Assembly: GCA_003427395.1 (NCBI GenBank)
Contig: BFEA01000033.1
Location: 5,042,324 to 5,106,323 of the forward strand
Direction: 5' to 3'
DNA length: 64,000 nt
DNA from: Chara braunii
Lineage: Eukaryota > Plantae > Charophyceae
Below the pieces are notes generated by a model. The model had not been told where the DNA came from. It saw only the letters and a list, made by a program, of their open reading frames with translations, and ran no database searches. The position numbers and the translations under genes are program-made. Of the stretch, positions 110 through 52,049 are shown in pieces; position 1 is the first letter of the stretch; each line of letters begins with the position of its first letter.

Positions 110-365
110 TGGCTGTTCCCTTCCTCTTTTCTTTGCCTCTTTGCGCTTTGGCTGTGTGCAAGTGGGTCGATATGACACACCGGGGTGGGGGCAGCCGCCG
201 CTCAACCTACATCCATGTGGGCGGCCTTGTACGCAAGAGGTTCTGAACAGGGGGAGTTGTAAGAAAGAAGATTAAAAAAAGAACGAATTATTCTTTTTCT
301 TGTTTTCTTCTGTTTTTTCCGCCTTTGCGCTCAGATATTCATGTGACGATATATATATCGTCAAT
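110..365 (+). repeat. Repeat unit 1, homologous to ~815-1040
   Basis: Shared blocks GTGCAAGTGGGTC...GGGGGCAGCC..CGCTCAACCT...GGCCTTGTACG and GCCTTTGCG, followed by an AT palindrome. Confidence 0.8.
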
Positions 366-1009
366 ATAGATAGATGAGGAGAAAAAAAAAAAAAAAAAAC
401 AATATATGAACATCCACGTCATCCTCGGCGTGCCTGTCCTATCTGCCGGGGTGGGGGCTCCTCTTCCTGATTGGTCAATAGAATCAAGCAGGTCAGGAGC
501 AACACTAATTGTAGGACAGAAAACTGCTCTCAAATACTACCAACAGATACGGAGTTGAAGAAAGAAGAAAAAAAAAAAATGAAAAAACGAAAAAGAAGTA
601 AAAGAAAAAAAGGAAAAAAGAACAAATTGCTGAAGAAAAGAAAAAAGAAAACAAGAAAAAAGAAAATAAGAAAAAAAAATGTTGAACTTTGTCGTGACAG
701 TGACAATTGGTTTATCTGTGGGATGTGTCATTTGCTTTGTTTGACTGATAGGCCATCCTCTTCCCTTGTCCTTTCTTTGACTGGATCCCTTTCTCTTTCT
801 CTTGCCTCTGTGAGGTTTGGTTTCCTCCTTTTCTTTACCTCTTTGCCTTTTGCCTGCGTGCAAGTGGGTCCTTGAGACACTGGGATGGGGGCAGCCAGCG
901 CTCAACCTGTCATCCACGTGGCTGGCCTTGTACGTAAGAGATGATGAACATGTGGAGCTTTCCTTCCTTCTTCCCTTTTTTGTTGTGTCTTTTTTCGCCT
1001 TTGCGTTCC

Positions 1010-1081
1010 GATACACGGTGTGATGAATATATATATTCAGCCTCCTGATGAGTCGGTGAAACTCTGACAAAACCGTTTGTC
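1010..1081 (+). ncRNA. Type III hammerhead ribozyme motif HHR1, degenerate
   Basis: CTGATGA at 1045-1051, stem II GTCGG/CTGAC, then AAAAC (GAAAC with G>A). Stem III GATACACGGT/ACCGTTTGTC. Stem I contains the palindrome TGAATATATATATTCA. Confidence 0.75.
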
Positions 1082-1131
1082 ACAGCCCCTCGTTTGTTGT
1101 CCTCTTCTCCCTCTCTGCGTACGGTTTGCGG

Positions 1132-1187
1132 GGCAGCTCTGTTTGACGGCTCCTGATGAGTCGGTGAAACTCCGATGAAACAGTTTG

Positions 1188-1189
<2 letters not shown>
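1132..1189 (+). ncRNA. Type III hammerhead ribozyme motif HHR2
   Basis: CTGATGA (1153-1159) GTCGG TGAAACT CCGAT GAAAC. Stem III CTGT/ACAG, stem I shortened. Runs directly into (CA)n. Confidence 0.8.
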
Positions 1190-1247
<58 letters not shown>

Positions 1248-1473: not shown

Positions 1474-1533
1474 GTGTCATCCTTGCGCAGGGACCATGCT
1501 AATCTTCTCTGTATTGATCGAGTTTTAACGGAT
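1474..1533 (-). pseudogene. 3'-truncated U6 snRNA copy with A-rich tail
   Basis: Minus strand ATCCGTTAAAA...ATACAGAGAAGATTAGCATGGTCCCTGCGCAAGGATGACAC followed by AAAAAAAGAAAAGAAG. Confidence 0.88.
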
Positions 1534-1909
1534 CTCCCTCTCTTCCTACGGTTCACCGGGGAGTTTTCTATGACGACATAAGCACTAGTCACCCCGTGCT
1601 TTTTTTGTGTGGAGGGTGGCAAGACGCTCAGTCTGAAAGTCTTTTGGGTATGTCTAATCGGTGGTACCTTTAACCACCTCGTGAAGGGTTTTGAATCGTC
1701 TGCCCAACACTGCCTTCATTGCCTGAGGTCTTTAGGCATAAAAATGCTTAGACTAGGGCTTTCCTCGATGCGTCTATCCCTATTTCCGACCAAATTCAGT
1801 GGCAAAAGTCGTAGTGTGAGGATGCCCTTTGTGCATTCTTCTGCTTGCCAGATCGCCATCTGTCAGAAATCTGCCTTTATCCGATAGGAACGAAAGGGAG
1901 CCTCCCCAC

Positions 1910-4205: not shown

Positions 4206-7135
4206 AGATGTATAGGGATAAACAGACGAGCAGATGGATGTGAGGATGGACATAGGAAGGCGGTGCACTGTAATTTTTGCCTAGATGCGAAGCCTGGTTC
4301 TGGTATGGGTTTGTGTTATCAGGTGTACTGACGCTCGGCTGTCCGTGGAGGTCGCACGTCCAGGTTCCCGGCTTGCACATGGCATCCGTCCTTGCTTTTA
4401 TGTTTACCAGCCACCAGCCAGTTCTGTTTTGATGGCCATCCATTATGTGCGAGCCACTCCTTTTTGCAATATTCCTCCTCTCACTTTCTCTCATGTACAT
4501 TTGGGCGCCTGCCCTAACTTCCTGTGTTCCAAATGCCGTCTATGTTTCTGCAGTGCAGATCATCATCTTTGGCTTCCCCCGCGGTCTTATTCTCTTTTCT
4601 TAGTTTTTAGCATGTGTCAACTTTTTCCAGGCATCATCGAGAATTTTCTGAAATCACGGCGAGTTTTACCTCACATTGTCTCAGGCATTGTGTGCTCTCC
4701 TCTCTCATATTCTGTCGCCCTGGAGTTCTCCTGCTCGTGCTCCTAGTCCAGCTTTTATCTCGCATGTGCATGTCATGCACCCTCTCTTTCCTATTTTCAC
4801 AGGCCACGAAGTACCCAGCAAGGGCCCCCTGTATAAACTATACACCCCTGTGTCTAATACAAATGCTTGTCTTGGATGTGCTGTCTTTTGCCACTTCAAT
4901 GCCTCCTGTCTGTTTCCCCCTCTCTCTCCCTCCCTCTCTCTCTCTCTCACACACACACTTTTTCCACCCCTTGGCTTTCCTGTCTGGTCTTGTGTTCTCC
5001 ATTCGTCTGGTTACGTACTTGCTGTTGGCTCTCCTGTTCTTCTCTGTATGCCTTTCTCCTCCCTTGCACCCTATGTATGCCTCTTTCTTGTCATCCGCTT
5101 CCTTATCGTCTGGGCCAATCCTACCTCTACTAAGCTCTTTGACTTCTCTGACACATGTCAAGACATGCACGTTGCACTGTTAATTGAACTTGTTGATGCT
5201 GCAATTGTTATTGTTGCATAGCATGGACAATCTTGTTCTTGTTATCGCTTGGCTTTTTCCGAGTTTCCCACCACCACTGACAGCAGTTTGACTCTCTGGT
5301 CGAGGGAGAATTGTTTCTGGCGATAATTTTGGTTGGTGGTGTGGCCTTTGGTGGTATTTGTTGTTCGTTGGGGGGATTGGGCTCTGGTTGAGGGAGATCA
5401 TCATCTGGGAGTCGGATGATGTTTCTCTTGAACGGTTTTAGTTGGTGAGGCGGCTTTTGGTGGCATGTGTCGGCACGTGTTTATTTTTGGGTGTTATAGA
5501 CTTGTGGTTCTCCAGCATCATCTTCATCGACTTGTAAACCGTCACCATCAACGTTGACCTTGCGATCATCCCGACCATCGTCGTCATCTACATCTATGGA
5601 TTGTGGAACGCTGCCGTCTCCAGCACAACCACTGTCATCTTCTTCGCCACTGCCATCGTTGTCATTGTCGTCATCACCGTCGGCATCATCATCGTCATCG
5701 TCATCACCGTCATCATCATTGCCATTATCATCGCACTCAGAACGCGTGGTGCTTCGATCATCATCATCATCATCATCCTCGTTTCTGCGGTCAATCTGTG
5801 GCTTGCCGCTTGTAATTGCGATCACGTGGATGCTGATGGGGTTAGCCAAGCCCAGAATACACAGCTTGGTTGTTATCCTGTCACCGGAGAGGAGCACCAC
5901 TGTGCCACTCATCCTTGTTGTCATCGCTATTGTTGTCACGTTGATGGTGCACGTTTTTTCGGCAATCAATGCGGTGGTGTGTCAGTTTGCGACTGGAGAG
6001 AGGAATTTTGATAGAAGGGACACTTCTTCTGTCCTGCCTTCTTCTCCTCATCCTCCCGCTCCTCAGCCAGGACAGCAAGCTGACTCTGGCTGCGGAAGTT
6101 CTTCTGTAAGTCGGATGGGAGAAGAAACCTGTTGTGATGCTGCCTGTGGCTGTGCTCCCGATGATGCCACACTTGTTCGTACCTCCCTCTCTAGATGTCT
6201 GCGCCTGTTGAAACCACAGCAGCAATCTCCATCCTTTTGTTTGCTAACTGGGGGGGTTGAAGGCTCTCCATCCCTTTCTCTTGAGACGTGCGTGTGTGTG
6301 TCTATTTACATATTTCTACCATATCACTTTTCCGTCCTCCCTTAAACACATTTCTACGATATCACTCTTCATACGCCCTGTTACCGTCCTTGAATCCTGC
6401 TTGGTGGTCTGTGGACTACTGATCACATACGCACATAGTACTTGTGTGCCTCCGTACATCGGTGTAGGAGGCTGGCTTTCCTGGCATGTTATCATTTCTC
6501 TGCAGTAGGTTGATAAATATGTGTACCTTCTACTCTCTTGTGGAAGTGCTGTGTCAGTGGTGATCGCCTTTTCTAGATTCTTGGGGTCTGAGCTTGGGGT
6601 TGAGATGAGATGTGAGGTGTGAAGATTGGTATGCTGTATGTTGGAGGTGTGAATAGAGTCTGTAGATGTGTAAAGACCAAGTGGTTAGGTTGTGGGAGAG
6701 GGTGATGTGTGTCTGTTGGGCTTGCATTTGGGAAGGTTTCTGCCTGCTGAATCTTGTTTTGTTGCTATCCCATCTTTCCCCTTTGCTGTCTATAACATGC
6801 TTTCGCTTGTAGTCATTTATTCTTACTTTCCTTTCATTCCTGTCTATCCCTCAGTGTAGAACTTAGTGCTGACAAGTGTAAAGATGTAGCTTGCCTCTGA
6901 CATTCACCCGGGTGTGGATCGGCGCTGTGGTTCCTGCCCTGCTACCTTGCACTCTTCTCTCCTCGCTCCCATCTTATCCTCTCCGTTATCCTTTGTCCGG
7001 ATTTCTTGCTCATGCCTGGGCTTCTTCCTCATATCACCCTCTCTTAGTGCTCTTCTGTTTCTTCCCTTCCTGTGTGTCCCTCCATCTCCTTCACTCTCCC
7101 TTCCCCCTCTTCCTACTGTTCAATATCTTTGTCAG

Positions 7136-7516
7136 GTTGAGGAGTTCTTTACCCCAATAGGGTCGAAGAGGTACAGTGCATCTCATAAGGATGGAATGGA
7201 CGACACGACCGAGGCCCCCGATGAGAACACAGATGGAGTCTCAAGCTTGAGCAGGGAGATTGGGAGGGAGACTTCAGAGACATCCCCCTTGGAATCAGAC
7301 TACCCGGTTGTGGAGAGAAGAAAAAGGCTGCCCGAGCCAAAGCAGAAAGAGAAATCCGTCAGTTTGTGGTCAATCATAAAGGAAAACGTTGGGAAAGACC
7401 TTACCCGGGTCTGCCTACCAGTCTATTTCAATGAGCCGCTATCCGCTTTGCAGAGAGCATTTGAAGAGCTTGAGTACTCATATCTTCTGGATCGAGCATA
7501 CAAGCTGGGTAAACAG
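7136..7516 (+). CDS. OSBP/ORP oxysterol-binding protein, internal exon A
   Basis: Pyrimidine tract + CAG acceptor at 7133-7135 and GT donor at 7517. Encodes [61 protein letters not shown], the start of the ORD domain as in plant ORP1/ORP2 proteins. 381 nt, phase 0. Confidence 0.93.
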
Positions 7517-7699
7517 GTTCGTCTCCATGCAGTCCCTTCTCGTGTCCCCTGCCTCTTGCCTTGTTTGTTATTTTCGTGGATGATTATGGCCTTTGTTTTC
7601 TGGCATGCCTTCTCTTCTTTGATGGTTTATTCTCCCCTCTTCGTCGTCCATCTTCCGTCCATAATTCCACATTCAATCTCCGTACCTCTCGACCTTCTA

Positions 7700-7767
<68 letters not shown>

Positions 7768-10700
7768 NNNNNNNNNNNNNNNNNNNNNNNNNNNNNNNNN
7801 NNNNNNNNNNNNNNNNNNNNNNNNNNNNNNNNNNNNNTCTCTCTCTCTCTCCCCCTCTGTCTCTCTCTGTCTCTGTCTGTGGTTGTCAGTTTTCCCCACT
7901 TTCTCCATTATTACGACATTCTTCCCGGTCCTCTCTTCCTCAGATTTGTGCACCTGCTTTGGCATCTTCCGTCTTTCTCTGAGTTACCCCCTCTGTGGCT
8001 GATTGACAACTAAAAATCGTCTGGCCAGCCTTCTCCTTGCTTTTCCTAGTTGCTGTTGTGCACGTTTTCCTCCCTTTCTTGTGCTTTCTTGCTAATCTCC
8101 AGGGCCTGGAAACACTTACAGACCCATTTTAGTCGGTGATTTTTTCAAGCCTTTCTGTCATATGCCTACTATTGTGTGCCTGTGATGCATAGTCGTGGAT
8201 CTGTTTTCTGCGGATAAGTTGCACAGGATGCAAGTAGAGTCTGAAAAGAAAAGACACTCTCTCACTACTCTGGTTTGTGATGATTCGATTCCTCCCGTCC
8301 CTTCCTTTCCGCCTTTCCTCCTTATCTCCCTCCCTTTCCGATTGTGATAAATTTTGAATTGCGATAGGACTGGGCTGTTTATGCTGTGAGATGAGCTGGT
8401 AGAAGTTATACTCTGTGACACCAGCTCTAAATCTGGTATAATGTCAAGTACCTTCTTAATTTCTTAAAGCTAAAAATATGGGTTTTGCAGTGGTGCAAAT
8501 GGACTTGACAATAACGACAGCGAGTGTCAATCTAAAAATGGTTAGATGAGATTTTCGGCAAAAAATTGTGGTCCTTTTTGTTTTTTTTGTTTTTTTCCCC
8601 CCAGCTGTTCGGCTGTGTACAATTAGCTGGGTAAAACGGGGTTCATGGTCTCAGACGATCGACTTCCCAGGAATGTGTGCCAACACACCTGCGTATTATG
8701 GAAGTAAAACTCAATAGCATGTCTAGCTTCTGCTCGATTCCCAGAGCTGAAAACACTGCACTGAAATGTAATCAGTATTGCTCATCAAACAGTGTCAAAG
8801 ATGTCTTCCCTGTTTATCTGCCAGGCGAAGGCGGGTTTGATCTCTTGACTCGGTAGTACATTGGTATCAGGTTTGGAAACCATTCAAAATGTCAATAAAT
8901 AGCTTGCGTGGTTGATGATGTGAGGAGCCGTGATGTGAGAAAGCGGATTCATTGCTTCACTTCGACCCTAAGGGTTCAATAGGAGAGGGACAAAGTGGTA
9001 GACACTTCACGTCCGATCTGATGCTAGCACTCACAACATCATCTATCAAGCTGGCCCATTCTTTGACAGGCTTTTGTTCTTGTCATGGATTTGGCAGTTT
9101 TCAACGAACAGTTGGGGAGAGAGGACTGTTGCTCTTTCCTAACCCAGGATGTGAGGCCCAGTGCATCCGAGTCCATGAAATAGAGTGTATGCAGTGATGA
9201 AGCCACTGTTTCATCGAGTCACATCTGATAGCTGCTAAATAAATCAGAGTGAGAAGATGAAGGTGGAATGGCTGGTAATCGTCTCGACTCCCTTTCTTGT
9301 TTTACCCTCCATATCAAAGCTTTCTGATATGATAATTGCCCAGGTAGTGTCTGATGCTGGTAGAAGATAGTCTCTGGAGCACATATGGGTTTGCGACGTT
9401 GGCAATAGGTAGTGTCTGATGCTGGTAGAAGATAGTCTCTGGAGCACATATGGGTTCGCGACGTTGACAATAGTATTCTACCGTATCCCAAAGGATAAGA
9501 CATTGCACAATCCCGCAATTTATTCGGACATGGTACGCTCATTTCATCTGTCCGCTCATCGCGACCTTGACCTACCCTCCTGAATTTGTTGCTGGCATCC
9601 TTCATTGTCGTACCACTTGGGACCACCACTGATGGATGGTACTCTCATGCACTTCCCTTCTGAATTTGTTGCTGGCATCCTTGATTGTCGTAGCAGTTTG
9701 GACCACCACTGATGATACTCTCATACATATGTTGTCCGATCATATGGAGCTCGATGAAACACACTGTTGTATCTATACTATGATGAATCCCCTCCTGATC
9801 TTTGCAGAATTGCCAGTGCCACAGAGAAGGATTATCTTTTCTGCTTCCTGCCATGCTCGCTCGTCTACCTATATAAATCATTTGTGAATGACATCCATAG
9901 GAGCAATTGGCTAGCAAGACATCACTTCTGCATATTTGAATGATGCTTGCAAGGGGTGATAACCGTGATATCCACTTTTTGTGAGAAAAGCAATGTGCTG
10001 CTTCAAGAGGCTGGCACCCAATGATGCTGGAGTGTCCGGAAGGTGGGGCTTGGTCCTAACTTCGGTGCACCCTCTCTCTCTGGCCTCTCTCTGCACACGT
10101 CGACTTTACCACTATGTCCACCAGTCTTCCTCACGATAGTATTGGTGCGCGATTGTGGCAAAAGCAAATGATGAAGCACCTGCTATGCCCTTCGTGATGC
10201 GCAAGAGGAATCTTGTTATTTCTGTTTGCATGGTGATTTGAGGATCCCATTCTGGCTGGTGGGACAACTGATTCAGGCGCTGACACTCTTTTCTCTCTGG
10301 TTCTTTGACACTTGTGGAACTTATGTTGTCACTCACATCTATCCGTAAACTGCGTAGGGTATGCTTGGGAATCAGGTTGTTGGTATTCCTGCGGAAACCA
10401 GCGCTGGCCTGGAGATCGACAAGAGGTTGTACTGGGATGAGCCCTGCTTCGTTGATGGTCCTGGTTAAGGTGATCTTCATGCTGCTTGGCAGTGTGCATT
10501 CATGTGTCACCTCATTGAGGCTGTTCTTTCATGGGGTCGACTGCCACAAAACAGCAGTGCATATGACTCCTGTACTTTCTGGGGTGCACACCTCTGCGTT
10601 CACCATGATGGCCTGCTTTGCATGACCGTCTCTGATGAAGTGGCTTCCCTGCTATTTGGTATCCCAATGCATCATCCAACATTCCTTCCCTTCATCTGCT

Positions 10701-12183: not shown

Positions 12184-13188
12184 TGTTTCTCTCCCTTTTT
12201 ATCTCACACATAGAGAGAGGCAATACCGGGGCAGTAGCAGCAAGCGATTGCATCAGTAGCATGGGCATTAGCTTGGCAGTAGAAGCAGATGAGTGATATG
12301 ACAGAACTGCAACAAGAAGTCGGGCAACCGAGGGCCAACACAGCTCACGATGCCGTCATCGAACCCCGTAAACAAATTTCTGAATACAGAGTGTGGGAGA
12401 AATATGGCACTGAACTGAATAGTTGAGGGTGAGGGTGGGTAGCCCCCCTCCCCTACCCCATGAGCATCTGCTCGTGTGTAGCTCACCATGACATCATCGG
12501 ACCGCATAAACAGCTTAGCTTTCAGCGGGGAAGAAACGTAGTACTACACTGAACAGTGGGAGGGGGGGGGGGGGGGGGGGGGAGCCATACACATGTTGCT
12601 GTGGCCTGGTAATGCTTCAGTCTGCTAGAATTCATGTCAACAGTTACCCTGATTTACACTGAATCATGAAAGCATTACCCTTCTTAGGCCTCACGAGCCT
12701 CCTCCGTCTGCCAGACCATGGTGCAGCCTACGGACTGTGTACTGGCCCCCGTTGTGGTATGTCATTGACAATATATATGAGCCATGGTCGGTTGCAGTAC
12801 TCGTGCCTCCTGCAGTGAGCTGGGCTCCTTTGCCCCCACTGGTGAGTTCATCTTTTCTGGAAATTCCACGAGTAGAGATCAACCACAACATTCAGGAGTG
12901 GAGCATTGCCTTGTTCAATTGCAAATAGACGACTGATATGTGCTAATTGAGCACGGTCACAGTACCTTTGCCTCCCATAGTCAGCGCGGATCCTTTCCCC
13001 GCTACGTTAATTCATCTTCCCAGCTCACCCATAGAGATGGGCTAGGGCATTTATGGTTTGGAACTCTGAATCACCTATAGGGATGGGTCAGGACTTTTAG
13101 GGTTTGGAATGTTATCTTGGTGAATTGGGACAGACTCACTTGCCCCTATGGAGCATGATCGTACTCCTTTTTGCGATTTGTGTGTGGG

Positions 13189-13280
13189 TGACTCGTTTTT
13201 ACAATTTGTGTGTGCCATCCTTGTACAAGGACCATGCTTACTTCTCTGTGTGGTTCCAATTTAATTGGTGTACCAAGGAT
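13189..13280 (-). pseudogene. Old, degenerate U6 snRNA copy
   Basis: GTGCCATCCTTGTACAAGGACCATGCTTACTTCTCTGTGTGGTTCCAATTT aligns colinearly with the reverse complement of U6. Confidence 0.8.
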
Positions 13281-13774
13281 GAGGGGCATAACCAATATCC
13301 TCCTGACTGCAATTTTGTAGAGGATTTTTCTAGGCTCTGTTCTCTGGCTGCTGCTAATGACTGTTCATCCCCATCGCCATAGACTTTCTGTGCTGTCCTA
13401 CTTGGCAATTGCAATGCAACATGATGCTGATCCCAGATTTCCCCTTCCTACTCTCTGGTGAAACGATTCATGTGGCCCTCAGCATCGATGTCCTGCAGGA
13501 TGCGTTCGGGGGCCGTCAGATGAAGCTGCAGCGTGCACATCCTGGTGAGAGCCTTGAGCTCTGACCTGACGGTCTTCTGTCGTTGGTACATGGACCTGGC
13601 CACTGGAGGGTCCTCGTGCTTCCGACCACTCGGGACCGTGTGGTAATCTTGTGGTGGTTCACAGCATGACTCGTGTTCTTGACATGATTTCTGTGCAATG
13701 ATGCAGATGTCCTCCATGAGAAGCGACCATCCACAGACTGTTGAGTGGTGGATCACATGTCCTCCTCCTTACTA

Positions 13775-14157: not shown

Positions 14158-14925
14158 CATGGTTGTCAACCGGACATCTGGATAGGGATCCAGACGGTCC
14201 AGTCTGGATGTCCAGATCCTGTGTCCGGTTTGAGGGGTCCGGTTGGGCCCCATTTTGAGAAAATTCGAAAAAAAAGTTGGGGTCCCCAGGCGATTTTCCA
14301 GTGCCTGGTGGACCCCCAAAATTTGTTGGCGCAGTTTTTGGTGCACTGTTGGGCCAACCGGACCGGCCCTGAGGGGCCTGTGCTTGCAATTTTGCGTGAG
14401 TTTCAGCGGGCCAAGGAGAAGTGTGTGTGTGTGTGTGTGGTGTCATATTCGCTATACACTCAAAAAAAGCATGACTGTGCCACTGTTTCGTCGGACTTTC
14501 ACCGACTCATCAGGATGTTGAACCCCGATAGTCTGCCCAGGATTCATTTGCCTGATGGATAAGGGTTCATGACATCGCCCAGAGTTAGTGACACCCCTGA
14601 GAAAAGTGGTCTGTGTGTGTGTGTGTGTGTGCACGACACGACAGTGTGTGTGTATGTAAGTGTGTTCAAAATAAGTCGGATAATAACAACTACAGCAGTG
14701 TGTCTGTTTGTTTGTTTGTTTGTTTTTGTTTTTGTGTTTGTTTGTTTGTTTGTTTGTGTGTGTGTGTGTGTGTGTGTGTTTAATCCGGACAGCCTGACCT
14801 GTCCATTCATAACCGGACCGTCCGGTTCCGTATGTCCGGTTGTCCGGATCGGTGTCCGGATTAATCCAGACACTGGTCCGGGCCTGGTGTCCGGTGTCTG
14901 GATGTCCGGGTCCGGGGCAACCATG
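14158..14925. mobile_element. TIR element with TCCGGA-rich ends (hAT-like) carrying the HHR3 insert
   Basis: CATGGTTGTC / GGCAACCATG termini and dense subterminal repeats. No TSD seen. A similar right end occurs at ~48848 and a similar left end at ~59976. Confidence 0.6.
14481..14537 (-). ncRNA. Type III hammerhead ribozyme motif HHR3
   Basis: Minus strand reads GGCAGACTATC GGGGTTCAACATC CTGATGA GTCGG TGAAAGT CCGAC GAAAC AGTG: intact core and perfect 5-bp stem II. Lies in a ~170-bp segment bounded by (GT)n on both sides. Confidence 0.85.
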
Positions 14926-19102: not shown

Positions 19103-19760
19103 CAGTTACATCTATTCAACAAGAGAGCCTTCTGCTCAGCATTCTCTTCCTGTGAGGAAAGACATTATTGGATGGAAAATGCATTGTACTGTCTGCATGT
19201 GATAAGATGATTGTGTTCGCTGGAAGGGTGAGGGCCTAGCAAGCTGTAACTCGTTCTAATACGGGAACCGGCTTGAGCAGGGTGGCATGCCCCTAAAGCA
19301 AATTATGACTTAGAGATGAGTATACACACGATAGACACCTTTGTTTGTATGTAAGTCATAATATACGCTATAGGCATGGTAGAGTTCTGGCCTTCGGCCT
19401 ATAGACAGAAGCAAGGGCGTATTGAACGAACTCAATCATTGGAGTAGATGATAAAGTCCGGTCTGCTAAAACCTTGTTGAAGCTCGCACACCAGGTTGAC
19501 TGACGAGATTTGACTGTCTCTTTCTGATGGATGAGGACATTATGGCTCGGTAGTGATGCGTGGTGAAGTCGTTGGTTGGTTGGTTAACTTGAGCAATGGA
19601 TTGTTTGGTTGATGGCTTGGCGGGTGGGTGTGTGGGTGGGGGGGAAAGGGAGGTGGGCGTGTTTGGCGGGTTGTATGCCGGATTCTTGTTGTGGGGGTGG
19701 TGGTGGTGTTTCTTTTTTTTTTTTCCCCGCCGCTTGGGTGCATGTCCGGGTGGGGCACAG

Positions 19761-19928
19761 GTTAGTCACCATCCAACCATAGTTGCTTGCCATTGTGATG
19801 GGAGAGGATGGAAATTCTGGGGAGATTCGAACCTCAAAAGCAAGTTCTGGGGGCGCTCAATTCAAGTTGATCCCGTGGGAATTCTGACGCTTGCTTTTGA
19901 TGATGGTGAAGTTTTCACTTGGAGCAAG
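19761..19928 (+). CDS. OSBP/ORP exon C
   Basis: CAG|...|GTAG. Encodes [40 protein letters not shown]...TWSK and completes the OSBP fingerprint EK|VSHHP across the B/C junction. 168 nt. Confidence 0.96.
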
Positions 19929-21173
19929 GTAGAACTCTGCACAGCCCCCATTTATTCAAAACGTCCGTTTACAGTTAAGTGCGTGCCTGCGCCGAATGTG
20001 CGCACACACACACTCACTCGTGGTCCTCAACCTGTACCTCTTTTCTCATGCTCGATTCTTTTATTGCTGTCTTTCTTTCTTCCCTTGCTTGCTTTCCCCT
20101 CCAGTCACAATTTATTCATTTTGCCAGACCTTGAATTGATAACGGCCATGTCCTCTGACACGAAAGAGGGGCTGTGGTCCCTACCTGATGCTGAGTTGAC
20201 ATGATGGAGCCTGCTGCTCGCACATGTTTTGTCTCCTTTGGAAACGAACTGTATTCTAGTTTTACTGTTTTTGTTATAGAAAAGTCAAAGAAAACATACA
20301 GAAAATTTGTATTCATCAACTAGAACTCTCTTCTATTCATCAACTAGAACTCTCTGCTAGAGCATATAATTGTTTGAAAAATGAAATGTCCAGAAAAAAT
20401 GGGCAAAAAAAACTGATGTGATGTTCTGTCCATTCTGCAACTTTTGTGAAGTTCCCAAAGGGAAAGAAAGAAGAGGCAGCTGAGCGAAAGAAATGACATT
20501 GTAAAGGCAATTCCATGAATTCTTTGTATTGATGTTGGGTGGCTTCAGCCACAATTCCATGCCTGTTCATCTGTCTGTTCATTCTGTTAGTTGTCCGTAG
20601 GTTCCAGTTCTGCAGATCTTTTTTTCTCTCCTCAGAATGGTCACAGCAAAGTCCCCGAGGTCCGAAGGATGTGCTCGTTGGACTTTGTACTCGTTCATTG
20701 CATGCTAGACTTATGACNNNNNNNNNNNNNNNNNNNNNNNNNNNNNNNNNNNNNNNNNNNNNNNNNNNNNNNNNNNNNNNNNNNNNNNNNNNNNNNNNNN
20801 NNNNNNNNNNNNNNNNNNNNNNNNNNNNNNNNNNNNNNNNNNNNNNNNNNNNAGGAGGTAAAGAACATTGACAGGCTGGGCGGCAGGCCCTCACTCCTGT
20901 CTCTGCTGAGCCTGTGTGGTTGTAGTTGAGGGGCCCTCAATATTTCTTTCTTTCTATCAGTGTTGCCTACCCCGACGGTTGGTGCCCCTTGACTGATCGG
21001 CCGCCAACCGGTCGGCTGGTCGGCACCTACCTGTTGGGGGCCGTCGGCATCCCACAAAAAAAAATTAAAAAATGGGTCCAGAACCCCTAATAACCATACT
21101 TGCGGCGCACTTCTGCGGTGCGCCGTGCGCAAATTGGTGATGCGCTCAATTTTTTATTTTTAGGGATGTGTGT

Positions 21174-21260
<87 letters not shown>

Positions 21261-21262
<2 letters not shown>

Positions 21263-24200
21263 TTACGATCCTGGCCAATTTCGAGGTATACAAACATCAG
21301 AAAGTACAATGCCGTCCAATTGCAAAAAGAAATGAATGAACTTGAGAGGAGAGAGAGAGGGAAAGAAGAAGAAGTAAGAAAGAAGAAGAAGATGATGTAC
21401 TCCAGCATAGACCAATGACAAGGCTCTTGTCCCTCGCCAACCAATCTCCTCCTCCTCATCTCCTCCCCTCTTATTCAAATGAGAAATAACAATAATAATG
21501 TGGAATGGCTGAACCAGAATTAATGTCCGAATCCCACTTCTACTGCAGGCACAACATGAGGTCTGCCATAGCCATGGCCACCCTTCCTCTTCCTCTACAT
21601 ACAGGCCGAGGCTATGGCGGAGTACTGAGGGCTCTCCCTCCTGTCCAAAGGACAACCAGAAGCAGCTATGCCGCTGCCCTTCTGTCCCCAGGTCAACTCC
21701 ATGCAGCTATGCCGCTGCCCACTCAACCGCCATGCCTGACTCTGTCCCGAGCTTCCTTGATGCGGCACTACCCCCACTGGGGCCTTCCGGATGCAGCGCC
21801 TAACAAGGTGATGAAGATGGTGTCTACCATAGCCAGGTAAGTACCCCACCACTCTCCTCCTTGGTCCCCTTCTCCCGCCTCCTCCTAACGGTAGAGCTCC
21901 ACCATAGCCAAGGTGGAAGCTCCAGGCTTCTTCCTCCCAGCAGTGCTGTAGTCCCAGCGCTACAGCCAGCGCTCCAGCAGCGTGTCGCCAAACTTGCACA
22001 CTGAAGAATGAGGCCGAGCTCTTGCCTCGGCCTCTTGATGTAGCGGCCTGCTTGCCTCCTGGCCGGTGACTTCCAGGCCGCTCGGCCTCCCAAGCAACCG
22101 GTACCTCCTCCCTTTTCGGAGGGACACATTTTGCAGACTCTGATATTGTCCGTACAGGCTCTAGACTCAGACTGGATGGACTGGTACCGGCCTAGACCTA
22201 GCCTACCGCTACTGGGCCTCTAAAAATGCCAACTTTGTCTCTTCTTCTGCTTGGCCTCGAGTACCCGGCGCATCTACTGCTACTGGGTGCGATACCGGCC
22301 TACCTGCCACTTGACTGTTTTTCCGCTACTCTCATTTTCGATTCTTCTAGAAAAGGTTGAATTGAAATACATTTATTAGTTTTACAATCAGTTTTCCGCA
22401 CTACTATATGTTGAGCAACGTCTACTAATCTTCTTGCAAGGTATCCTGAATCCGATGTTCTTATTGCAGTATCTGCAACACCTTTTCTTGCACCATAACA
22501 AGATATAATATATTCTGCTAAAGAAAGTCCCTCTCTAAAGAATAGGTAAATCAATAACTCGATGCCACGACCACAGGTAAATACCGGCCCTACGGGCCTG
22601 CCAAACAAGCAAGTACCCTTGCGGGTCACACACACACCCATGCCAACAAGCACTCAGACAGGCACGCAAGTCCACAGGCACGCACACATACACACTTAGA
22701 GAACACAGCAGAATGTGGGAAACTTGGCAAGGCATCCATTCCATCGGCAGAACTTCAGAAATCAGCACTGTTCTCAGTCTGTGTTATGGCGGGTCATTAC
22801 ACTAACCCCTCCTCAAGAGCGAGGTCCCTTCGAGCAAGTAACTTAATCAGAGTCCTTGCATAATGCATCATAAGCATAAATAGCAAAGAGAGATAGGGTA
22901 TGTTCCGTAGGAGTGAGGGTGGCAGTGAATTTAGGCTGCTGTTCGGAACTAATCAATCGTTCGTATGCGTTGACGACTCGCAGGGCACTCTGCAGCAAAT
23001 CTTTCTTAGCAATCGAGTAAAAGTCATTCAATGGATGATATAGGAAGTGGACTTTGTATTGTTTGTTTCTCCCCTTCCCACTGTGCTCGACAATTCTGTC
23101 AATCTCGCGACTGCCCTTGATTGCACGAGGAATCATTGATTCTCGATATGGAAAAGTTTCGGGTGGTTGATACGGAAACAACTTCGATGCATGAAAGACT
23201 GGGTACGCGCGTAGATGAGGAGGCACGTCGATTGTGTAAGAAGAACCAAATGAATCATTCCCTACTCGGTTCACCACCTTCCACGGACCTTAGTACTGAG
23301 GAAGAAGCTTCCGTGATACACTCAGACATCTTTACCCAAACATAACTTCCCACTGTGAAAGGGTCAGGCTGGCGCTTTTTGTTTGCATGCTTAATCATGG
23401 CACTGCGTCGCCTTTCCATGGCTGCGACAACAACTTTGAGCAAACGATCAAACTTAGCGCTGTAGCCTGGCTGGCCAGGTGTCAGGCCAGGTGGCTGTTC
23501 AGGAAGCAGATAGGATAGAGGATTGCGAATTTTCCACCCCAGGTGCAGCCGGTTAGGTGTCATCCCGGTGGAGTGTATGGAGTTGTTGTACAACCCCTGC
23601 ACAATCGGCAACTCCTCATCCTAAGAGTTCTGATCAGGCACAATTAGAGCTCGGAGAAGGTGGATCACAGTCTGGTTGATCTCCTCGGCCAACCCATTGG
23701 CTTCGGGATGTCGACCAGATGTCATCGTGAGTTTGATGTCATAGATCTGGGAGGTGAAGTCCTTCCAATCTGCACTTATGAACCTAGTGTCCCGGTCACT
23801 CACGAGAGTTTTCGGGGGCTCATACTGCAAAATGTACTTCTTATGAAACTCTTTGATCACAAGGTCAGTTGGGGCGTGAGGTGGCAATGGAATCAGATTC
23901 AGAAATTTTGAAAAGTGGTCAACGATCACCATTACTTGCGAATATCCATTCCTACTCTTCTTCCCCATGTCCGTGAAGTCGATGGAAAGAGACTCACCCG
24001 GGCCATCAGGAATAGGAAGAGGATGCAACAACCCATAGGGCTTTTGCCGAGACGGTTTGATGCGTTGTGCCATTCCTTTCATTCCAGGCCATACAAATTT
24101 TTGCAGCAGACTTCCGTATGTTTTCTAAAAGTCGAAGTGTCCACTCCAACCATGAGCCAAGTCCAAGAAGTGAGTAAGGATCGACTCATGGTTGGGTACA

Positions 24201-27200
24201 CACAGTCGGTCGTGCTTCCGGTAACGTCGGATAAGTAAGCCCTTACATTTATGGAAATCAGGCTGACTGCTAAGGTCAGCCCGAATCTGCTCAAGGATGG
24301 GACTGAGTTCCGGGTCCTTGGCAGTGTGCTCAATGAGTTCCTCCTTCAAATTCTTACGGAGATCATAGGAACCAACAAGGCAAGTCATGTACTCAGGATG
24401 GCGAGACAATGCATCCGCAACGCGATTGTAACAACCTTTCTTGTGCTTAAGTTCAAAATCATACACATCAATCTCATGCAACCAACGGGTCAATGTGGTT
24501 GATGGATTAATCTGTGTCTGAATCCATTTCAAAGTCTCGTGATTTGAGAACACTTTGAAATGACGACCCAAGAGGTAGTGTTTCCAATGATTTAGTGCCT
24601 CTCTCAAGGCGTAGAGTTCTCGCATGTAAGTGGAGGCAACTACCTTGTGATTGGGCATGCGTTTGCTGTAATATTCAAGCGGATGTAAGCCATCACCGTC
24701 ATCTTGCTGCAGCACTGCACCAATCCCATACAAGCTTGCATCCGTAGTTACTACGAATGTAAGTTTGGGATCTGCAATGCGGAGCATCGGATGACTCACC
24801 AAAGCCTCCTTCAATGCTTGGAAGGCTGTTGCGCATTCCCCATCCCATGTGTAAGACATATTCTTACTTGTCAACTTGGACAACGGACGGACGATGATAG
24901 AGAATTTGGGTACAAACTTACGGCAGTATGAAAATAACGTAACTCGCGGACATTGGCCGGTTGAGGCCAGTTGCGGATGACCTCAACTTTGGTTGCCTCG
25001 GGCTCTAGGCCTGCAGCAGATAGCCGATGTCCAAGGTAGATGACGTTGTGCCTCCCAAACTCAGATTTCTCCAAGTTGAGATGGAGCTGCGCATCCTTGA
25101 GGATTTGTAACACTTCCTCAAGGTGTCTCATGTGCTCCTCCATCGACTTGTTAGAGATTAGTATGTCGTTCAAATAAACAACACCAAAGCGATTGATCTG
25201 ATTGCGGAACACCTTGTCCATGAGACTTTGAAAGGTGGCCGGTGCATTCGTGAGACCGAACGGCATGATGGTAAATTCGTACAACCCGTCGCGAGTTTTG
25301 AATGCAGTTTTGTGCTGGTCTGCAGGGTCGACTTGAATCTGGTGGTAGCCAGACTTGAGATCGATCTTGCGGAAGACCTTGCACCCACCTGCAGCATCAA
25401 GCAGATCATCAATACGCGGCAAAGGATATGCATTCTTTCTTGTTATTTTATTCAGTCCGCGGTAATCGATACACATCCGTAGTTTGCCTCCTTTCTTTGG
25501 GACAAACAGAACCGGTGCACCGAACTCGGATTTGCTTGGCTTGATCCATCCTTTCCCAATCATGTCGTCAATCTGTCTACGCAAGTCTTCCAATTCGTTT
25601 GAGCCCATTCGATAGACACAACCTTTTGGAGGAGTGCTACCTTCTATCAACTCGATTTTGTGTCGGACCGGACGCACGGAAACTCCATGCGGTTCGGCCA
25701 AGACTTAAGGGAATCGATTGAGAAGGTTGCGGATTTCTGATGGGACTTCCGGAGGTGGATCATCACTTTCAGGTGCAAGCATACCGGATTGCATAGGTGC
25801 AGCCAAAACAACAGAATTGGAAGCATAGTCGTTTGGACTAGAAGTAGATTTAGTAGAGATTGAAGTAGTTGCATTAGAGGTAGAAACAACATGCAAAGTA
25901 GAATCATTATGTACAACAAAAATAGAAGGCACATGAGCAGGCCTAACAAAGGCTATATACATTTGCTCATCAACTTTGCGCCTGTGCCACTTCTTGCATA
26001 ACTGCATTGCATTGACAAAAGTTACTTGGAACTCGCGCGACTCATCCAAGAGGACTGGACTCTTGATTCCCATGGCACCTTTGACCATGAATTGTGAGTC
26101 CTTCCATGTCGTTCTTTCACATTGGGCTTGCAACCAGCCCAAGCCAATAACCGCGTCGAAGGGGCACTGATCAAGGACATAGAAGTTCAGTTCATGCGTG
26201 ATTGTGCGGTCTGCGTCAAAGGTAGTGCGCACACCTTTCTGTATGTGTAGAGGTAACAACCTCTTGGTTGCCCACTTGGGTCCGACAAGGATTCTGCAAG
26301 GTCACTTGCTTCATCCCTAAGCGTGCCTTACGAATGCCGTGCGGTGAGAAGTAGTTGGCAGTTGCACCACAATCAACCAACACACTGATGTAACGACCAT
26401 TAATGTAGAGTTTGAAGAAGATCAACTTCGTTCTACCTTGCGCGTGTTCTTGCTTCATATGAGCCCAACGCGTCAACAAAGCATGAAAGTCAATTTCTTT
26501 CGACTCCACCCAAGGCTCCTTGTATAGGATGTGTATTTTCTCAGCCTTGGAATCAGCATCAAATGGGGTCTCAGGAGAGGTTTCTTGAGTGGGATCAGAA
26601 TCCCATGAAGGAACTGCACTTACATGTTCAGCCTCTCCATCTGTAGAGTGTGCTGATGATGTCTCTACCCCCGTTGCTGGTTTCCTTGTTGCAATCTGGA
26701 ACAATGTTGGACTGAGTGTCCCGGTTTGGTGCAATGCAGGCAAACCCCTTTCTTCACCCTGTGTTTCCACTCACTTTCACTTATCTGGAGATCTGCCCAT
26801 GGTTTGGTGGTAGGATCTTCCGGTTTGGGTGGAATCTTCGCTCCCTTGGGAAGAAGGATGGTGTTAGTGTTGTTCTTCATTACGGTTCTGGGTCCCTTAC
26901 TTTTGAAGGCAGTCTTCTTGAAGGCATTCATGGATTCTATGTCATTTACATACTCAAACTCATGAGTTGACGAAGAGCAAGATGCCTCGCAGCCTTGCTC
27001 TTGATCATCATCAAGAGAAGGATCCTCTGCGAAGGTCTCCTTATCATCCTCAAGTAGATCGTGCGCTGAAAAACGGTTGCTGCCTGGGAACCGTTTGCGG
27101 CCGGTGGTCTTTTTGCCACCCGATCCACCCGGGAGGTCTTGTGCCTCTAGCTTGACTAAGTCTCGCATGAGGGTAAGCCAATCTGTGTACGCTATGAGTC

Positions 27201-27842
27201 TGAGCCTCAGGCGATGTGTTATAGTAGAGGGGACCGTACCTTTAATCACATCCAAGCAAGACTTCGCAGTCATCTCCAAATCAGGAGTAGCAAAAAGTTT
27301 ACTGACGTACTGCTGCAGAGTATGCATGGTGCTGGTCCACTTGTTGTGCTTGAGCTTGTCAAGCTTAAGTCTAGCTTTGGATGCAGCATGTGGATCAACA
27401 TACTGTTTGATCAAGAGTTCCTCGAGTGTGGCTATAGGCGTAGCCTTCAGCCATTTGTTCAGGTCTATTCTTTTATAGCCTGCTTGCACAACTTGGATTT
27501 CTAAGGAACCCCTTACGGTGGGTTCCGCATTGGTCCCTAGGACCGACGACTGAGTAACTGGGAGTGTCCCCAACACATCAAAGTAGGATCGCATAGAGCT
27601 GATCCGGGATTCAATGTCGTCCTTTCAAACCATGTAAGGAAAGCTGCAGCTAGGACCAGCGATTGCTGGGTCCGGATTCGGGGCTGCAATAGTTCGACAA
27701 GCACTCAGACAGGCACGCAAGTCCACAGGCACGCACACATACAGACTTAGAGAACACAGCAGAATGCGGGAATCTTGGCAAGGCATCCATTCCATCGGCA
27801 GAACTTCAGAAATCAGCACTGTTGTTATGGCGGGTCATTACA
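21261..27842 (-). mobile_element. Ty3/Gypsy chromodomain LTR retrotransposon 1, degenerate, 5' LTR mostly deleted
   Basis: 3' LTR 21261-22801 (TG..CA) with adjacent PPT. gag with CCHC knuckle (26665-27594), protease LVDCGAT, RT (24871-25701, YLNDIL), RNase H TTDAS, integrase, chromodomain EIDRIVEH..QYKVHF. Residual 5' LTR at 27695-27842. GAGA flanks. Confidence 0.95.
22334..22558 (-). pseudogene. rpoC2: Plastid-type RNA polymerase beta'' fragment (NUPT-like) inside the LTR
   Basis: AT-rich. IDLPI, then after a frameshift [52 protein letters not shown]. Absent from the sister LTRs. Confidence 0.9.
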
Positions 27843-32604: not shown

Positions 32605-32718
32605 TTTTTATTTTTGAAAAAAAAAGGATCATTTCTCGATTTATGCGTGTCATCCTTGCGCAGTGGCCATGCGAATCTTCTCTGTATCGTTCCAATTGTA
32701 ACGGATGTCACGAAGGAC
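32605..32718 (-). pseudogene. Full-length U6 snRNA retrocopy
   Basis: U6 body at 32626-32718, 3' oligo(U) retained (A run 32617-32625), then an A-rich tail. Imperfect flanking repeat GTAAGGAA..TCCT. Confidence 0.94.
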
Positions 32719-35619: not shown

Positions 35620-38600
35620 TGTTACGATCCTGGCCACTTTTGAAGTACACATTCATGAGAAAGTACAATGCCCTTGAATGTCGTCCAATCGCAAAAAGAA
35701 ATGAATGAACTTAAAGGGAGAGAGAGGGAAAGAAGACGAAGAAGAAGAAAAAGAAAGAAAGAAAGAAGAAGAAGAAGATGTAGACCAGCAAAGACCAATG
35801 ATAATGCCTCTCTTCCTCCTTTTCTCCTCCCCTCCCCCTCTTATTCAAACAATAAATAATAATAATAATGTCAAATGGCTAAACTGGAATCAATTTTCGA
35901 ATCCCTCTTCTACTGCAGGCACCACATAAGGTCACCGTAGCCATGGCCACTGTTCCCTTCCTTCTCGAAGGCCGAGGCTATGGCGGACTACCAGGGCCTT
36001 GCCCTGCTGTGCAAAGGACAACACAAAGCAGCTATGCCCACTGCCACTCAGGCCGTCATGCCTGACTCTGCCTCAGAGCTTCTTGGTGCGGCGCAACCCG
36101 ACTGGGGCCTTCCTGATGCAGCACCTGACAAGGTAATGAAGATGGTGGCCGCTGTAGCCAGGTAGGCACCTCACCTCTCTCCCTCGTAGCCTCCCTCTCC
36201 TTCCTCCTACTGGTAGAGCTCCACCATAGCCGTGGTGGAAGCTCCTGAGCTCCTTCTTCCTCCTAGCGCTGCTCTGCCCAGCGCTCCTCCCTGCTCCAGC
36301 GCTGTAAAAGCTGGTGCTTGCTCAAGCAGCACGACGTCCAGACTTGCATACCGCAAATGAGGAGGAGCTACTCGCTCCTCCTTGAGACATAGGGGCCTAC
36401 TTGTGCTTTGGCAGTGACTTCCAGGCTGCGCGGCCTCCAAGCAACAGAGGGAAACATCAATGCAGGCTCTGGTATCTTCCGTACAGGCCCTAGACTCAGG
36501 CTACTTGGACTGGTACCGGCCTACCTCTAACCTACCACTACTGGGCCTCTAAAAATGCCAACTTTTTGTCTTCCGCTGCTCGACCTCAAGTACTCGACAC
36601 TTCTACCACTACTTGAGTGGTACCGGCCTGCCTGCTACTTGAGTGTATTTCCCGCTGGTCGCGGGCCTACCCCCGCTACTTGAGTGTTTTTTCCACTGCA
36701 ACCCTCAAAGTCACGGCCACAGGTAAGTACCGGCCCTTCGGGGTCCTCCCAAGGAAGCAAGTACCCTTGTGAGTCGCACACACTCACTGGCCGACAAACA
36801 CACAGACCATCAAGCACACACACACACACAGACTAAGAAAACTCAGCAGAATGCGGGAATCTCAGCAAGGCATTCATTCCAGCAGCAGAACTCAGAAATC
36901 AGCAGTGTTCTCAGTTTGTGTTTTGGCGGGTCATTACACTACACCCCCTCAAGAGCGAGGTCGCTTCGAGCGAGTAACTCACTCGGAGTCCCTGCACAAT
37001 GCATCATATGCGTAGATGGTAAATAGCGATCGTGTATGTTCCGTGGGAGTGAGGGAAGCAGTAAATTTCAGTTGCTGTTCGGAGACAATCAGCCGTTCAT
37101 ATGCTTTGACGACTCGTGGTGCGCTTTGCAGCCGATCTTTCCTAGAAATCCAGCAAAAAATATCTAGCGGGTGATATGAAAAATGGACCTTGTATTGCCT
37201 GTTCTTCCCCTTTCCATCGTGCTCGACAATTCTATCAATCTCGTGACCGCCATTCATTGCACAAGGGATCACTGGTTCTCGATACAGAAAAGTTTCAGGC
37301 GACTGATACTGAAACGACTTTGATGCATGAAGGACTGGGTACGTGAGCAGATGAGGAGGCACATCAATCACATAGGAAGGATCAAATGAATCATCCGGCA
37401 CCTGTTTCATTACCTGCCACAGACCGTAATACTGAGGAAGACGCTTTTGCGACCCCTCTTCTTTTTCAGAAAATTCAGACATTTTGACCCAGATGTAACC
37501 TCCCACTCTGAAAGGTTCAGGCTGGGGTAATTGTTAGCATGTTTAATCATGGCACTGCGTCGCCTCTTCATAGCTGCAACAACTTTGAGCAAGCAATCAA
37601 ATTTAGCACTTTAGCCCGGCTGGCCAGGTGTTAGTCCAGGTGTCGGATCGGGAAACAGGTAGGATAGGGGATAGCAAATCTTCCACCTTAGATGCAACGG
37701 ACGTGGTGTGATGCCTGTGGAGGACTGTATGGAGTTGTTTTATAATCCGAACACAGTGACATAAGCTTGGAATGGAAGCCCCAATAAATGGGGACAGTGA
37801 CATAAGCTTGTTTCAAGGCAGTTATAAAATCTGGCTTCTTATTCTACTTTGATTTGGAGCTGCTGTAACTTGAGCTCATCATGTTATATTAGCTGGTTTA
37901 AAACAACAAGCCCTTTATGGCACATTAGCCGCTATTCTTCTAGCTTTAGTTTAGGGTTTAGGGTTTAGGCAATTCCTCATCCCAGGAGTGCTGATCAGGC
38001 ACAATTAGAGCGCGGAGAAGTTGGATCACGGTCTGGTTGATCTCCTCAGCCAATCCATTGACTTCAGGATGTGGACCAGACGTCATCTTGAGTTTGATGT
38101 CATAGATCTTGGAGGTGAAGTCCTTCCAATGTGCACTTATGAACCTAGTGTCCGGATCACGCACAAGAGTCTTCGCGAGGCCATACTGCAGAACATAACT
38201 CTTGTTAAACTCCTCGATCACAAGGTTAGTTGGGGCGTGAGGTGGCAAATGTCAGTGAAGTCAATGGAGGCAGACTCACTAGGGCCATCAGGTATAGGAA
38301 GAGGATGCAGCAGCCCGTAGGGCTTTTGCCGAGATGGTTTGATGCGTTGACAAACTCGACACTCAACCACAAATTTTCGGGCCATTCCTTTCATCCCAGG
38401 CCAAACAATCTTTTCCAATAGGCTTCTGTAGATCTTTTCAAAACCAAAGTGTCCACTTTGACAATGAGCCAAGTCCAAGAAGTGAGTGCGAAGAGGCTCA
38501 TGGTTGGGTGCACACAACCGGTCATGCTTTCCATAGTGTCGGAAGCGCAAACCTTTACAGTCGTGGAAATCAGGCTTGACTGCGAGGGTTAGCTTTGATC

Positions 38601-44600: not shown

Positions 44601-44798
44601 AAGCAAGCAAGTACCCTTGTGGGTCACACACACACTGAGCGACAAACACTCAGACAGGCATGCAGACCATCAAGCACGCACACACACACAGACTAAGAAA
44701 ACTCAGCAGAATGCGGGAATCTCAGCAAGGCATCCATTCCAGTGGCGGAACTCAGAAATCAGCAGTGTTCTCAGTCTGTGTTTTGGCGGGTCATTACA
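35620..44798 (-). mobile_element. Ty3/Gypsy chromodomain LTR retrotransposon 2, both LTRs present, degenerate
   Basis: LTRs 35620-36938 and 43498-44798 (TG..CA). PBS TGGTATCAGAGC (tRNA-iMet) at 43485-43496, PPT next to 36938, TSD TCTT. gag/PR/RT/RH/INT/chromodomain fragments homologous to element 1. Confidence 0.96.
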
Positions 44799-51152: not shown

Positions 51153-52049
51153 GTGGGCAGGAGATTTCTTCTCTCTCAACCTCCCTCTGCTTTTCTAGTT
51201 GTGTACTGCTTGGTGTCATTTCGTTTGCACTGGGTTGCGACCATGGATCAGGGACAAAGCCCGTTCAATTGTCGGTCAAGGCTGAAATCCACACCACTAA
51301 GCCTTCAAGGATTATCACTCCTGGATAAACAGTTAGCATTCCTACCTGCCAGGCTGGAGGAGGCTGGCTTTCCTGTTACCGCCACTTTCCCTTCCCGAGG
51401 CGGGATCTATTTGCATGATTTGTAAGAGGGAAATACTGTCCCCTTGGGGAGATTTATCAGGTGTGAATTAACACTCTGAAGTTTGAGCATGATCTTTGAT
51501 TTGTTGTCACTATTCAGAAAGCTTGGCTGCAGTGAGAGGCAAGCTGAACAGAAGGACAGAAGGCGTATTGCTCGGTTTCAACTTGCATTTTGGCAAACTC
51601 CATGTCAAGCTTTGTCATGTCGTTTGATGGTTCTCACTTTGGATGCTGGCAAACTCCAAGTCAAGCTTTGTCATGTCGTTTGATGGATCTCACTTTGGAT
51701 GCTGATCAACTATGTGCTGGATAAATTGGCGACATCAGCATTTTGCCGTAGTTTCAATGGATAACGTGGGTCACAACTTGCAAATCTGCTGCAAACAGTG
51801 GTGCAAATATTGGCTCTCACATCATTTTGATGGTGCTAGGCACTGTTAGCTTTAACCATACATCAAGATTTGTGGCCAACGTCCACGATGGTGTTTCAGT
51901 TTGGAATCAACACTGGGGGACACAGATGCCCTTCCCTTTATCTATTTCGCCCTCAAAGTTGATAAATGTCCACCTTCTGTTTGCCCTAGCCTTGGGGTCA
52001 CCGGATGCAATGATGTTTCCCAACCTGCACCTCTCTCAATCACCCGCCA

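Follow-up and report, generated by a model that had tools for sequence, protein, structure and literature searches.

In this work, positions 1036-1192 of the window (the whole 64-kb stretch of Chara braunii DNA that was analysed) were interpreted, with a probability of about 0.68, as two 5'-truncated, inactive subfamily A copies of a short, non-coding and very common retroelement family that carries a hammerhead ribozyme, lying in the (AT)n tail of a repeat derived from a Penelope-like element (PLE). The sequence comparisons suggest that this family is non-autonomous and PLE-mobilised, and that its ribozyme trims the 5' end of the element RNA. The sample comprised the window and twelve more loci of GCA_003427395.1, together 454 kb of non-N DNA, and the RNA reads (fragmented oligo-dT libraries) and DNA contigs were aligned only with window positions 700-1190, i.e., with the subfamily A region.

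A first-pass annotation had pointed to two hammerhead cores 108 nt apart, and both are present on the plus strand, at 1045 and 1153. The 17-mer of core and first stem II strand found there recurs at 14513 on the minus strand, against 0.22 occurrences expected by chance in the window. The features of the window are as follows:

114-363, plus strand: second M unit, ending TGTGACG and (AT)n; five nt of this end recur in inverted orientation and give a junction palindrome without a hammerhead
710-1035, plus strand: M unit, with a Chlamys-1-type 3' UTR motif at 822-957 and the end TGTGAT followed by (AT)n; source of the word ACGGT
1024-1039, no strand: perfect 16-nt palindrome composed of the M-unit end, the (AT)n target and the first four bases of unit A1 (loop 1)
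1036-1148, plus strand: unit A1, a 5'-truncated copy of the ~125-nt subfamily A element, ending TTTGACG
1045-1076, plus strand: HHR1, comprising core, stem II and the 3' strand of stem III
1149-1192, plus strand: 5' part of unit A2, a partial tandem copy that starts ~10 nt past the native cleavage site
1533-1580, plus strand: 3' tail of unit A2; between it and the core lie a (CA)n/(GA)n tract, pieces of U6 retrocopies and a gap
14437-14611, minus strand: subfamily B element lying in (CA)n; it carries HHR3, a complete type III hammerhead (core at 14513, cleavage site after 14527)

Unit A1 aligns over 113 nt with a subfamily A copy in locus L007. Its first base lies within loop 1, 5 nt past the native cleavage site, and it is preceded by the end of another repeat and a (TA)n tract, with loose read ends before 1036. 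The second core, HHR2, belongs to unit A2, which is broken up beside the (CA)n/(GA)n tract by the U6 pieces at 1253-1552; these pieces seem to be duplicated across the assembly gap. The expectation that the copies carry mutations was correct: relative to the family, HHR1 has G12>A at 1069, C>T at 1065 and A>C at 1074, and HHR2 has C>T at 1176, the majority bases in RNA reads and DNA contigs being C at 1065, G at 1069 (the conserved G12), A at 1074 and C at 1176.

The apparent covariation of stem III between the two copies, on which the annotation had relied, has a different origin. The words themselves exist, ACGGT/ACCGT in HHR1 and CTGT/ACAG (1180-1183) in HHR2. At 1074, A was found in 2889/3148 and 4564/4939 RNA reads and in 99% of the DNA contig depth, and ACCGT (1072-1076) is a private change of HHR1 from the family ACAGT, which is carried by 92-99% of family reads. 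Its partner ACGGT (1015-1019) lies within the 3' end of the M unit, where paralogues have ACAAT, ACAGT, TTCAT or TTTAT, and the CTGT of HHR2 (1139-1142) is the tail of the preceding unit A1. The same M-(AT)n-A layout occurs in L007 with a longer A start and no pairing of the ACGGT/ACCGT type. Depth at 1006-1022, which includes ACGGT, was ~20 RNA reads and 2,900 summed contig depth, compared with thousands of RNA reads and 0.6-2.6 million summed contig depth over the core, and none of the read and contig pieces listed bridged the M/A1 junction. The chance of a 5-bp partner for ACCGT in the 32-position upstream stretch is 2% with strict pairing and 11% with G.U pairs, so such a coincidence is to be expected among many copies. 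The 5' halves of HHR1 and HHR2 are foreign and come from insertion junctions.

The palindrome ascribed to stem I of HHR1 is real as a sequence, perfect over its 16 nt, and is a junction product rather than a native stem: folded as stem I, it leaves the base of stem I open, and a similar palindrome stands at 344-363 without any ribozyme. In HHR2 no stem I helix forms, and in both copies the native stem III partner and the NUH triplet strand 5' of stem I are missing. In hammerheads, G12 acts as the general base. HHR1 has lost it and also has G at position 17, which was reported to make even intact motifs 8- to 100-fold slower (PMC3884650). HHR1 is very likely dead because it combines G12>A and G at position 17 with the lack of a stem I, and HHR2, to judge from its structure, is very likely dead as well.

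The complete copies found elsewhere belong to three subfamilies whose flanks are unrelated: subfamily A sits in (TA)n, B in (CA)n and C in (AT)n or A-rich tracts. Natural complete copies stand, for example, at L007:25777-25845 (minus strand) and L010:18734-18802. The subfamily A element, with which window positions 1038-1148 align, was found in L007, L013, L014, L016 and L017. Its native upstream strand, recovered from loose read ends before 1036, ends GCAGACTGT(N)GAGGG; it occurs in 564 + 834 RNA reads and 207 DNA contigs, at an agreement of just about 0.5 since junctions occur among them, and also in the genomic copies L017:5655, L017:19614 and L007:21195. This strand pairs with ACAGTTT to form a stem III of 7-8 bp, and one copy carries the compensatory pair GAGATTGT/ACAATCTC. 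The type III topology proposed for the window copies was thus borne out on complete copies at other sites, by covarying stems II and III, and stem III covariation among genomic copies is found in complete copies of A, B and C. In seven B and C copies, 88% of the cells of the type III structure are paired, above 500/500 shuffles and every slid register. Both partners have changed in five pairs, of which two belong to stem III and two to stem II, while the fifth closes loop 1; as this comparison covers two lineages only, it is supportive and does not amount to a probability.

The family consensus contains the core CUGANGA...GAAA with stem II, and stem III measures 6-8 bp in complete copies. Stem I has 4-5 bp around a UCA loop 1 that is invariant in the three subfamilies, while its closing pair varies (U-A, C-G, U.G). 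For HHR3, stem I had been described as near-palindromic with a 1-nt loop; the near-palindrome stands, and the supposed loop is the family's 5-bp stem with the UCA triloop, in the geometry of RF00008. HHR3 has mismatches in stems I and III and scored 76.7 bits on model R1, of which it is itself a training sequence. Comparison with Rfam, as the annotation had recommended, confirmed the geometry: the B copy in L007 has a 5-bp stem I and triloop as in the RF00008 consensus, and scored 48.1 bits, just short of the gathering score of 48.5. With Hammerhead_3, HHR2 reached 21.1 bits, and the scan of the window at the gathering score returned U6 only and no hammerhead. A model built from B and C copies gave about 20 copies in the Chara loci, HHR2 scoring 35 bits and HHR1 28 bits, the lowest of the near-full copies. 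Position 17 in subfamily A masters is a mixture of C, A and U, and the subfamily A tail resembles the subfamily B upstream strand and is complementary to the stem III strand of the A unit itself. In PLMVd hammerheads the triloop is UAA and loop 2 is of UGAGAU type (PMC2632901), and type III motifs were reported to cleave efficiently in monomeric form (PMC6155905). Master copies carry the hammerhead about 120 nt from the element 3' end. Judged by its sequence, the native ribozyme of the family is a canonical type III hammerhead that would need no dimer, because its stem I has 4-5 bp around UCA, as in RF00008 and PLMVd.

Several other sequences were found in the surroundings of these copies. Five U6 snRNA copies or retrocopies, all on the minus strand, lie at 1253-1327, 1444-1552, 2094-2194, 13184-13288 and 32618-32718. 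Exons of an oxysterol-binding protein gene were located at 6914-8002 and 19596-20204 (plus strand); HHR3 is antisense between exons of this gene, and the tandem at 1036-1192 may lie in an upstream intron of it. Decayed Ty3/Gypsy copies occupy 21260-27842, 35620-41410 and 43497-44798, and the Gypsy RT of the window matches Chara braunii CBR_g45514 at 89%. Six loci turned up in pattern scans of metagenome and viral contigs; they have only a 29-nt core and stem II in common with the Chara family and are unrelated to it. Two of these (L001 and L003) are 2.35-kb circular metagenome contigs, 88% alike and free of long ORFs, with a type III hammerhead sharing core and stem II with the family; they are probably viroid-like RNAs unrelated to it. 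In L004 (3434-3499), and also in L002, L005 and L006, an intergenic hammerhead with the identical 29-nt core lies in a phage-like contig. The viral contigs gave no match to PLE protein.

Hammerhead cores numbered 19 in the 454 kb, ~one per 24 kb, compared with 0 in shuffled DNA; extrapolated from this non-random sample, the genome would contain tens of thousands of copies. Subfamily A copies show variable 5' truncation, partial tandems and neighbouring inverted copies. Of 12 A copies, 8 have their 5' end in the interval from -4 to +17 around the cleavage site, for which a binomial test of uniform truncation, calculated post hoc, gave P about 0.0002-0.001; three start within 4 nt of the site. 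Most A copies have no 5' strand of stem III, and most B and C copies have the whole ribozyme. At other sites the core spacings are 185, 452 and ~260 nt, and most complete copies are solitary. Thousands of oligo-dT reads, 3-4:1 in the sense direction, covered the A unit; they stem from many loci, and intronic read-through may have contributed. In these reads no pile-up of read starts was seen at the cleavage site, the window lacking the first 5 nt past the site and the libraries being fragmented. No back-joint at the cleavage site was found in the RNA reads on 700-1190, from libraries in which oligo-dT selects against circles.

The probable partner is an element of Chlamys-1 type. Locus L010 contains a decayed element with an RT that corresponds to the Chlamys-1_cBra entry of Craig et al., and further copies occur in L013-L017. 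In the Chlamys-1-type elements in L010, L013 and L016, the 3' terminus is AGTTYTGTGACA plus (AT)n. That of A units is AGYTCTGTTTG(TG)ACG and then (AT)n, with loose read ends behind 1145-1148, and M units end TGTGAY and (AT)n. The 3' end TGTGACR+(AT)n is common to the family and the Chlamys-1-type PLEs, the likeness of the A unit being limited to 6-8 nt. The 3' UTR motif at window 822-957 and 121-256 is 72-80% identical to Chlamys-1-type elements and was also located at L010:12696-12809, L013:4652-4764, L016:13306-13418, L015:18581-18665 and L017:16047-16125. Because this motif is common to both, the M units derive from a Chlamys-1-type PLE. The motif is conserved and looks structured, with 31 predicted pairs, three with compensatory change, and the copy at 822-957 gave no Rfam match; it could be a protein-binding signal or an unassigned ribozyme. 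No hammerhead was found between the motif and the 3' end of the autonomous Chlamys-1 copies. A pedigree from an autonomous pLTR was seen for the M units and not for the hammerhead unit, and no PLE ORF adjoins the tandem at 1036-1192. Decayed Penelope-like RT remnants lie on the plus strand of the window at 10322-10678 and 51739-52952. On the minus strand of L007 (5497-9486) there is a Chlamys-2_cBra-type element with a zinc-knuckle ORF, GIY-YIG and RT, near which no hammerhead was detectable. PLEs are known for partial tandems, inverted copies, 5' truncation and microsatellite targets (PMC8557442).

We hypothesize that a master copy is transcribed by read-through and that its hammerhead would cut the RNA ~120 nt before the element 3' end, freeing the element from the read-through transcript. 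The 3' product would retain the TGTGACR end and could be bound in trans by the Chlamys-1 RT/GIY-YIG protein, and target-primed reverse transcription would then insert it into (TA)n, often with several insertions, in both orientations, at a single site. Most daughters would begin at or just past the cleavage site and, because half of stem III is lost, would be unable to cleave again. Junction palindromes would follow from the self-complementarity of (TA)n. Cleavage would not be obligatory in B and C, because most of their copies keep the whole ribozyme, and 5' ends near hairpins could instead result from RT stalling. We give about even odds to the broader proposal of a Chara superfamily with at least three subfamilies and, by extrapolation, tens of thousands of copies, SINE-like in character, in which the 5' end of the RNA is set by an active canonical type III hammerhead and the product is placed in microsatellites by Penelope-like proteins.

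The same element could also be mobilised by PLEs while carrying the hammerhead as a passenger or relic, acquired from a retrozyme or viroid-like RNA and without a present role, with RT stalling at stems I and II as the cause of the clustered 5' ends. Most A copies indeed lack the 5' strand, B and C copies come mostly from uncleaved RNA, no RNA start peak appears in the oligo-dT reads on 700-1190, and Craig et al. suggest that hammerheads may simply parasitise PLEs (PMC8557442). This is nevertheless unlikely, as the compensatory changes in stems II and III and the invariant UCA in three subfamilies with unrelated flanks point to selection on the fold, and three copies begin at most 4 nt from the cleavage site. 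Somewhat less likely again is a non-LTR retrozyme cycle, in which tandem hammerheads release monomers that form circles and are copied back. It would fit subfamily C best: three complete subfamily C type III hammerheads lie on the plus strand of L010 (18209-18802) at spacings of 264 and 261 nt, within the 150-450-nt range of animal retrozymes, and animal non-LTR retrozymes are PLE-derived. From its arrangement, this trimer is the best candidate for a monomer-releasing, circle-forming unit. In subfamily A, however, tandem neighbours are cut at differing points with (AT)n between them and restore no complete ribozyme, and the RNA reads contain no cleavage-site back-joint, although oligo-dT selection disfavours circles.

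Two further readings concern the ribozyme itself. The first-pass annotation had proposed a permuted type III variant in which, owing to a palindromic stem I, cleavage takes place in a dimer. This must be considered very improbable, since the native ribozyme has standard monomer geometry, that of RF00008 and PLMVd, and monomeric type III motifs cleave well (PMC6155905). It is true that in B and C two strands of stem I and loop 1 can pair with each other, leaving one central C.C mismatch, and that such a self-duplex is more stable per strand than the hairpin (in subfamily B, -7.0 against -3.2 kcal/mol, computed without a concentration term), but any stem with a UNA triloop could self-duplex. Moreover, a single junction contains the perfect palindrome, the native A sequence shows none, and most complete copies are solitary. 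The reading as type I hammerheads from the pLTR of a described Chara PLE, with the GUC after the core as cleavage site, can practically be dismissed. GAAAC-AGTTT-GTC does stand behind both cores, and Chlamys-2_cBra and PLE-X were reported with canonical hammerheads (PMC8557442). The bases past GUC, though, find no pairing partner in the strand that precedes the core, and the type I stem I is unable to form, which answers the annotation's own concern about such a fold. GUC is also missing in B and C, the upstream strand covaries with the 3' strand, and no such motif lies near the Chlamys-2-type copy in L007. We therefore retain the reading of a PLE-mobilised family with a 5'-trimming type III ribozyme.

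The suggestion that the family is undescribed and PLE-related agrees with its PLE-type 3' end and target and with the papers searched, in which no such family is described. Only one paper found deals with both Chara and hammerheads (Craig 2021); it reports canonical hammerheads in two other Chara PLE types, Chlamys-2_cBra and PLE-X, gives no account of the present family, and treats the role of hammerheads in PLE retrotransposition as an open question (PMC8557442). An abundant type III family with PLE-type ends would offer a direct test of that role. The papers searched associate type III hammerheads with LTR retrozymes mobilised by Gypsy and type I hammerheads with PLE-linked retrozymes, and a plant-type ribozyme combined with Penelope-like spreading is a little-described pairing. 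If true, the SINE-like reading would break the published split between type III with LTR/Gypsy and type I with non-LTR/PLE, and would do so in the algal lineage that is sister to land plants; it may also indicate the origin of plant retrozyme ribozymes. As a caution, (TA)n insertions manufacture palindromes and apparent covariation.

In the reading retained here, the family resembles SINE/LINE pairs, which have a 3' end in common with the autonomous partner, and R2-type elements, in which a 5' HDV-like ribozyme frees the 5' end of the element. It differs in that cleavage of a type III hammerhead removes half of its stem III, so that daughters cannot cleave again. With the type III hammerheads of RF00008 and PLMVd, the family shares the core, the topology, a 5-bp stem I with a UNA triloop and a loop 2 of UGAAA type; it differs in its 5-bp stem II with a 7-nt loop and in being a genomic repeat and not a viroid, and HHR1 and HHR2 are incomplete. 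Plant LTR retrozymes (Cervera 2016, PMC4918200) are likewise non-coding, type III, streptophyte and transcribed, but have ~350-bp LTRs, a hammerhead spacing of 600-1000 nt and about 100 or fewer copies, whereas the Chara family shows 5' truncation, microsatellite targets and, by extrapolation, tens of thousands of copies. This class was rejected for the window, where ~350-bp LTRs and a 600-1000-nt spacing are absent and the 108-nt interval is that of a partial tandem and not of a retrozyme LTR pair. No tRNA-Met PBS occurs within 1.5 kb of the three window cores, and elsewhere there are only scattered mismatched matches. Target site duplications are masked by the microsatellite flanks. With the Chlamys-1_cBra PLE (Craig 2021, PMC8557442), the family has in common the 3' terminus, the (TA)n target, partial tandems, inversions and 5' truncation; the A unit, on the other hand, has no ORF, its homology is limited to the last 6-8 nt, and the autonomous copies examined have no 3'-end hammerhead. 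A minimal dimer-acting PLE hammerhead (stem III of 0 or 1-2 bp, palindromic loop 3) was also rejected, stem III here having 6-8 bp, and so was membership in the animal non-LTR retrozyme class, a type I hammerhead being absent and the covariation of type III. Regular tandem monomers with full ribozymes are not found in subfamily A, and there is one C trimer at ~260 nt. Animal non-LTR retrozymes and PLE pLTR hammerheads (PMC7229834, PMC4209133, bioRxiv 10.64898/2026.07.22.740005) are, like the Chara family, non-autonomous, PLE-linked, short and tandem-prone, but their hammerheads are type I, often minimal and dimer-acting via stem III, while those of Chara are type III with a long stem III and unequal partial tandems. 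By analogy, the family would function most like the PLE-derived animal non-LTR retrozymes, which have type I motifs.
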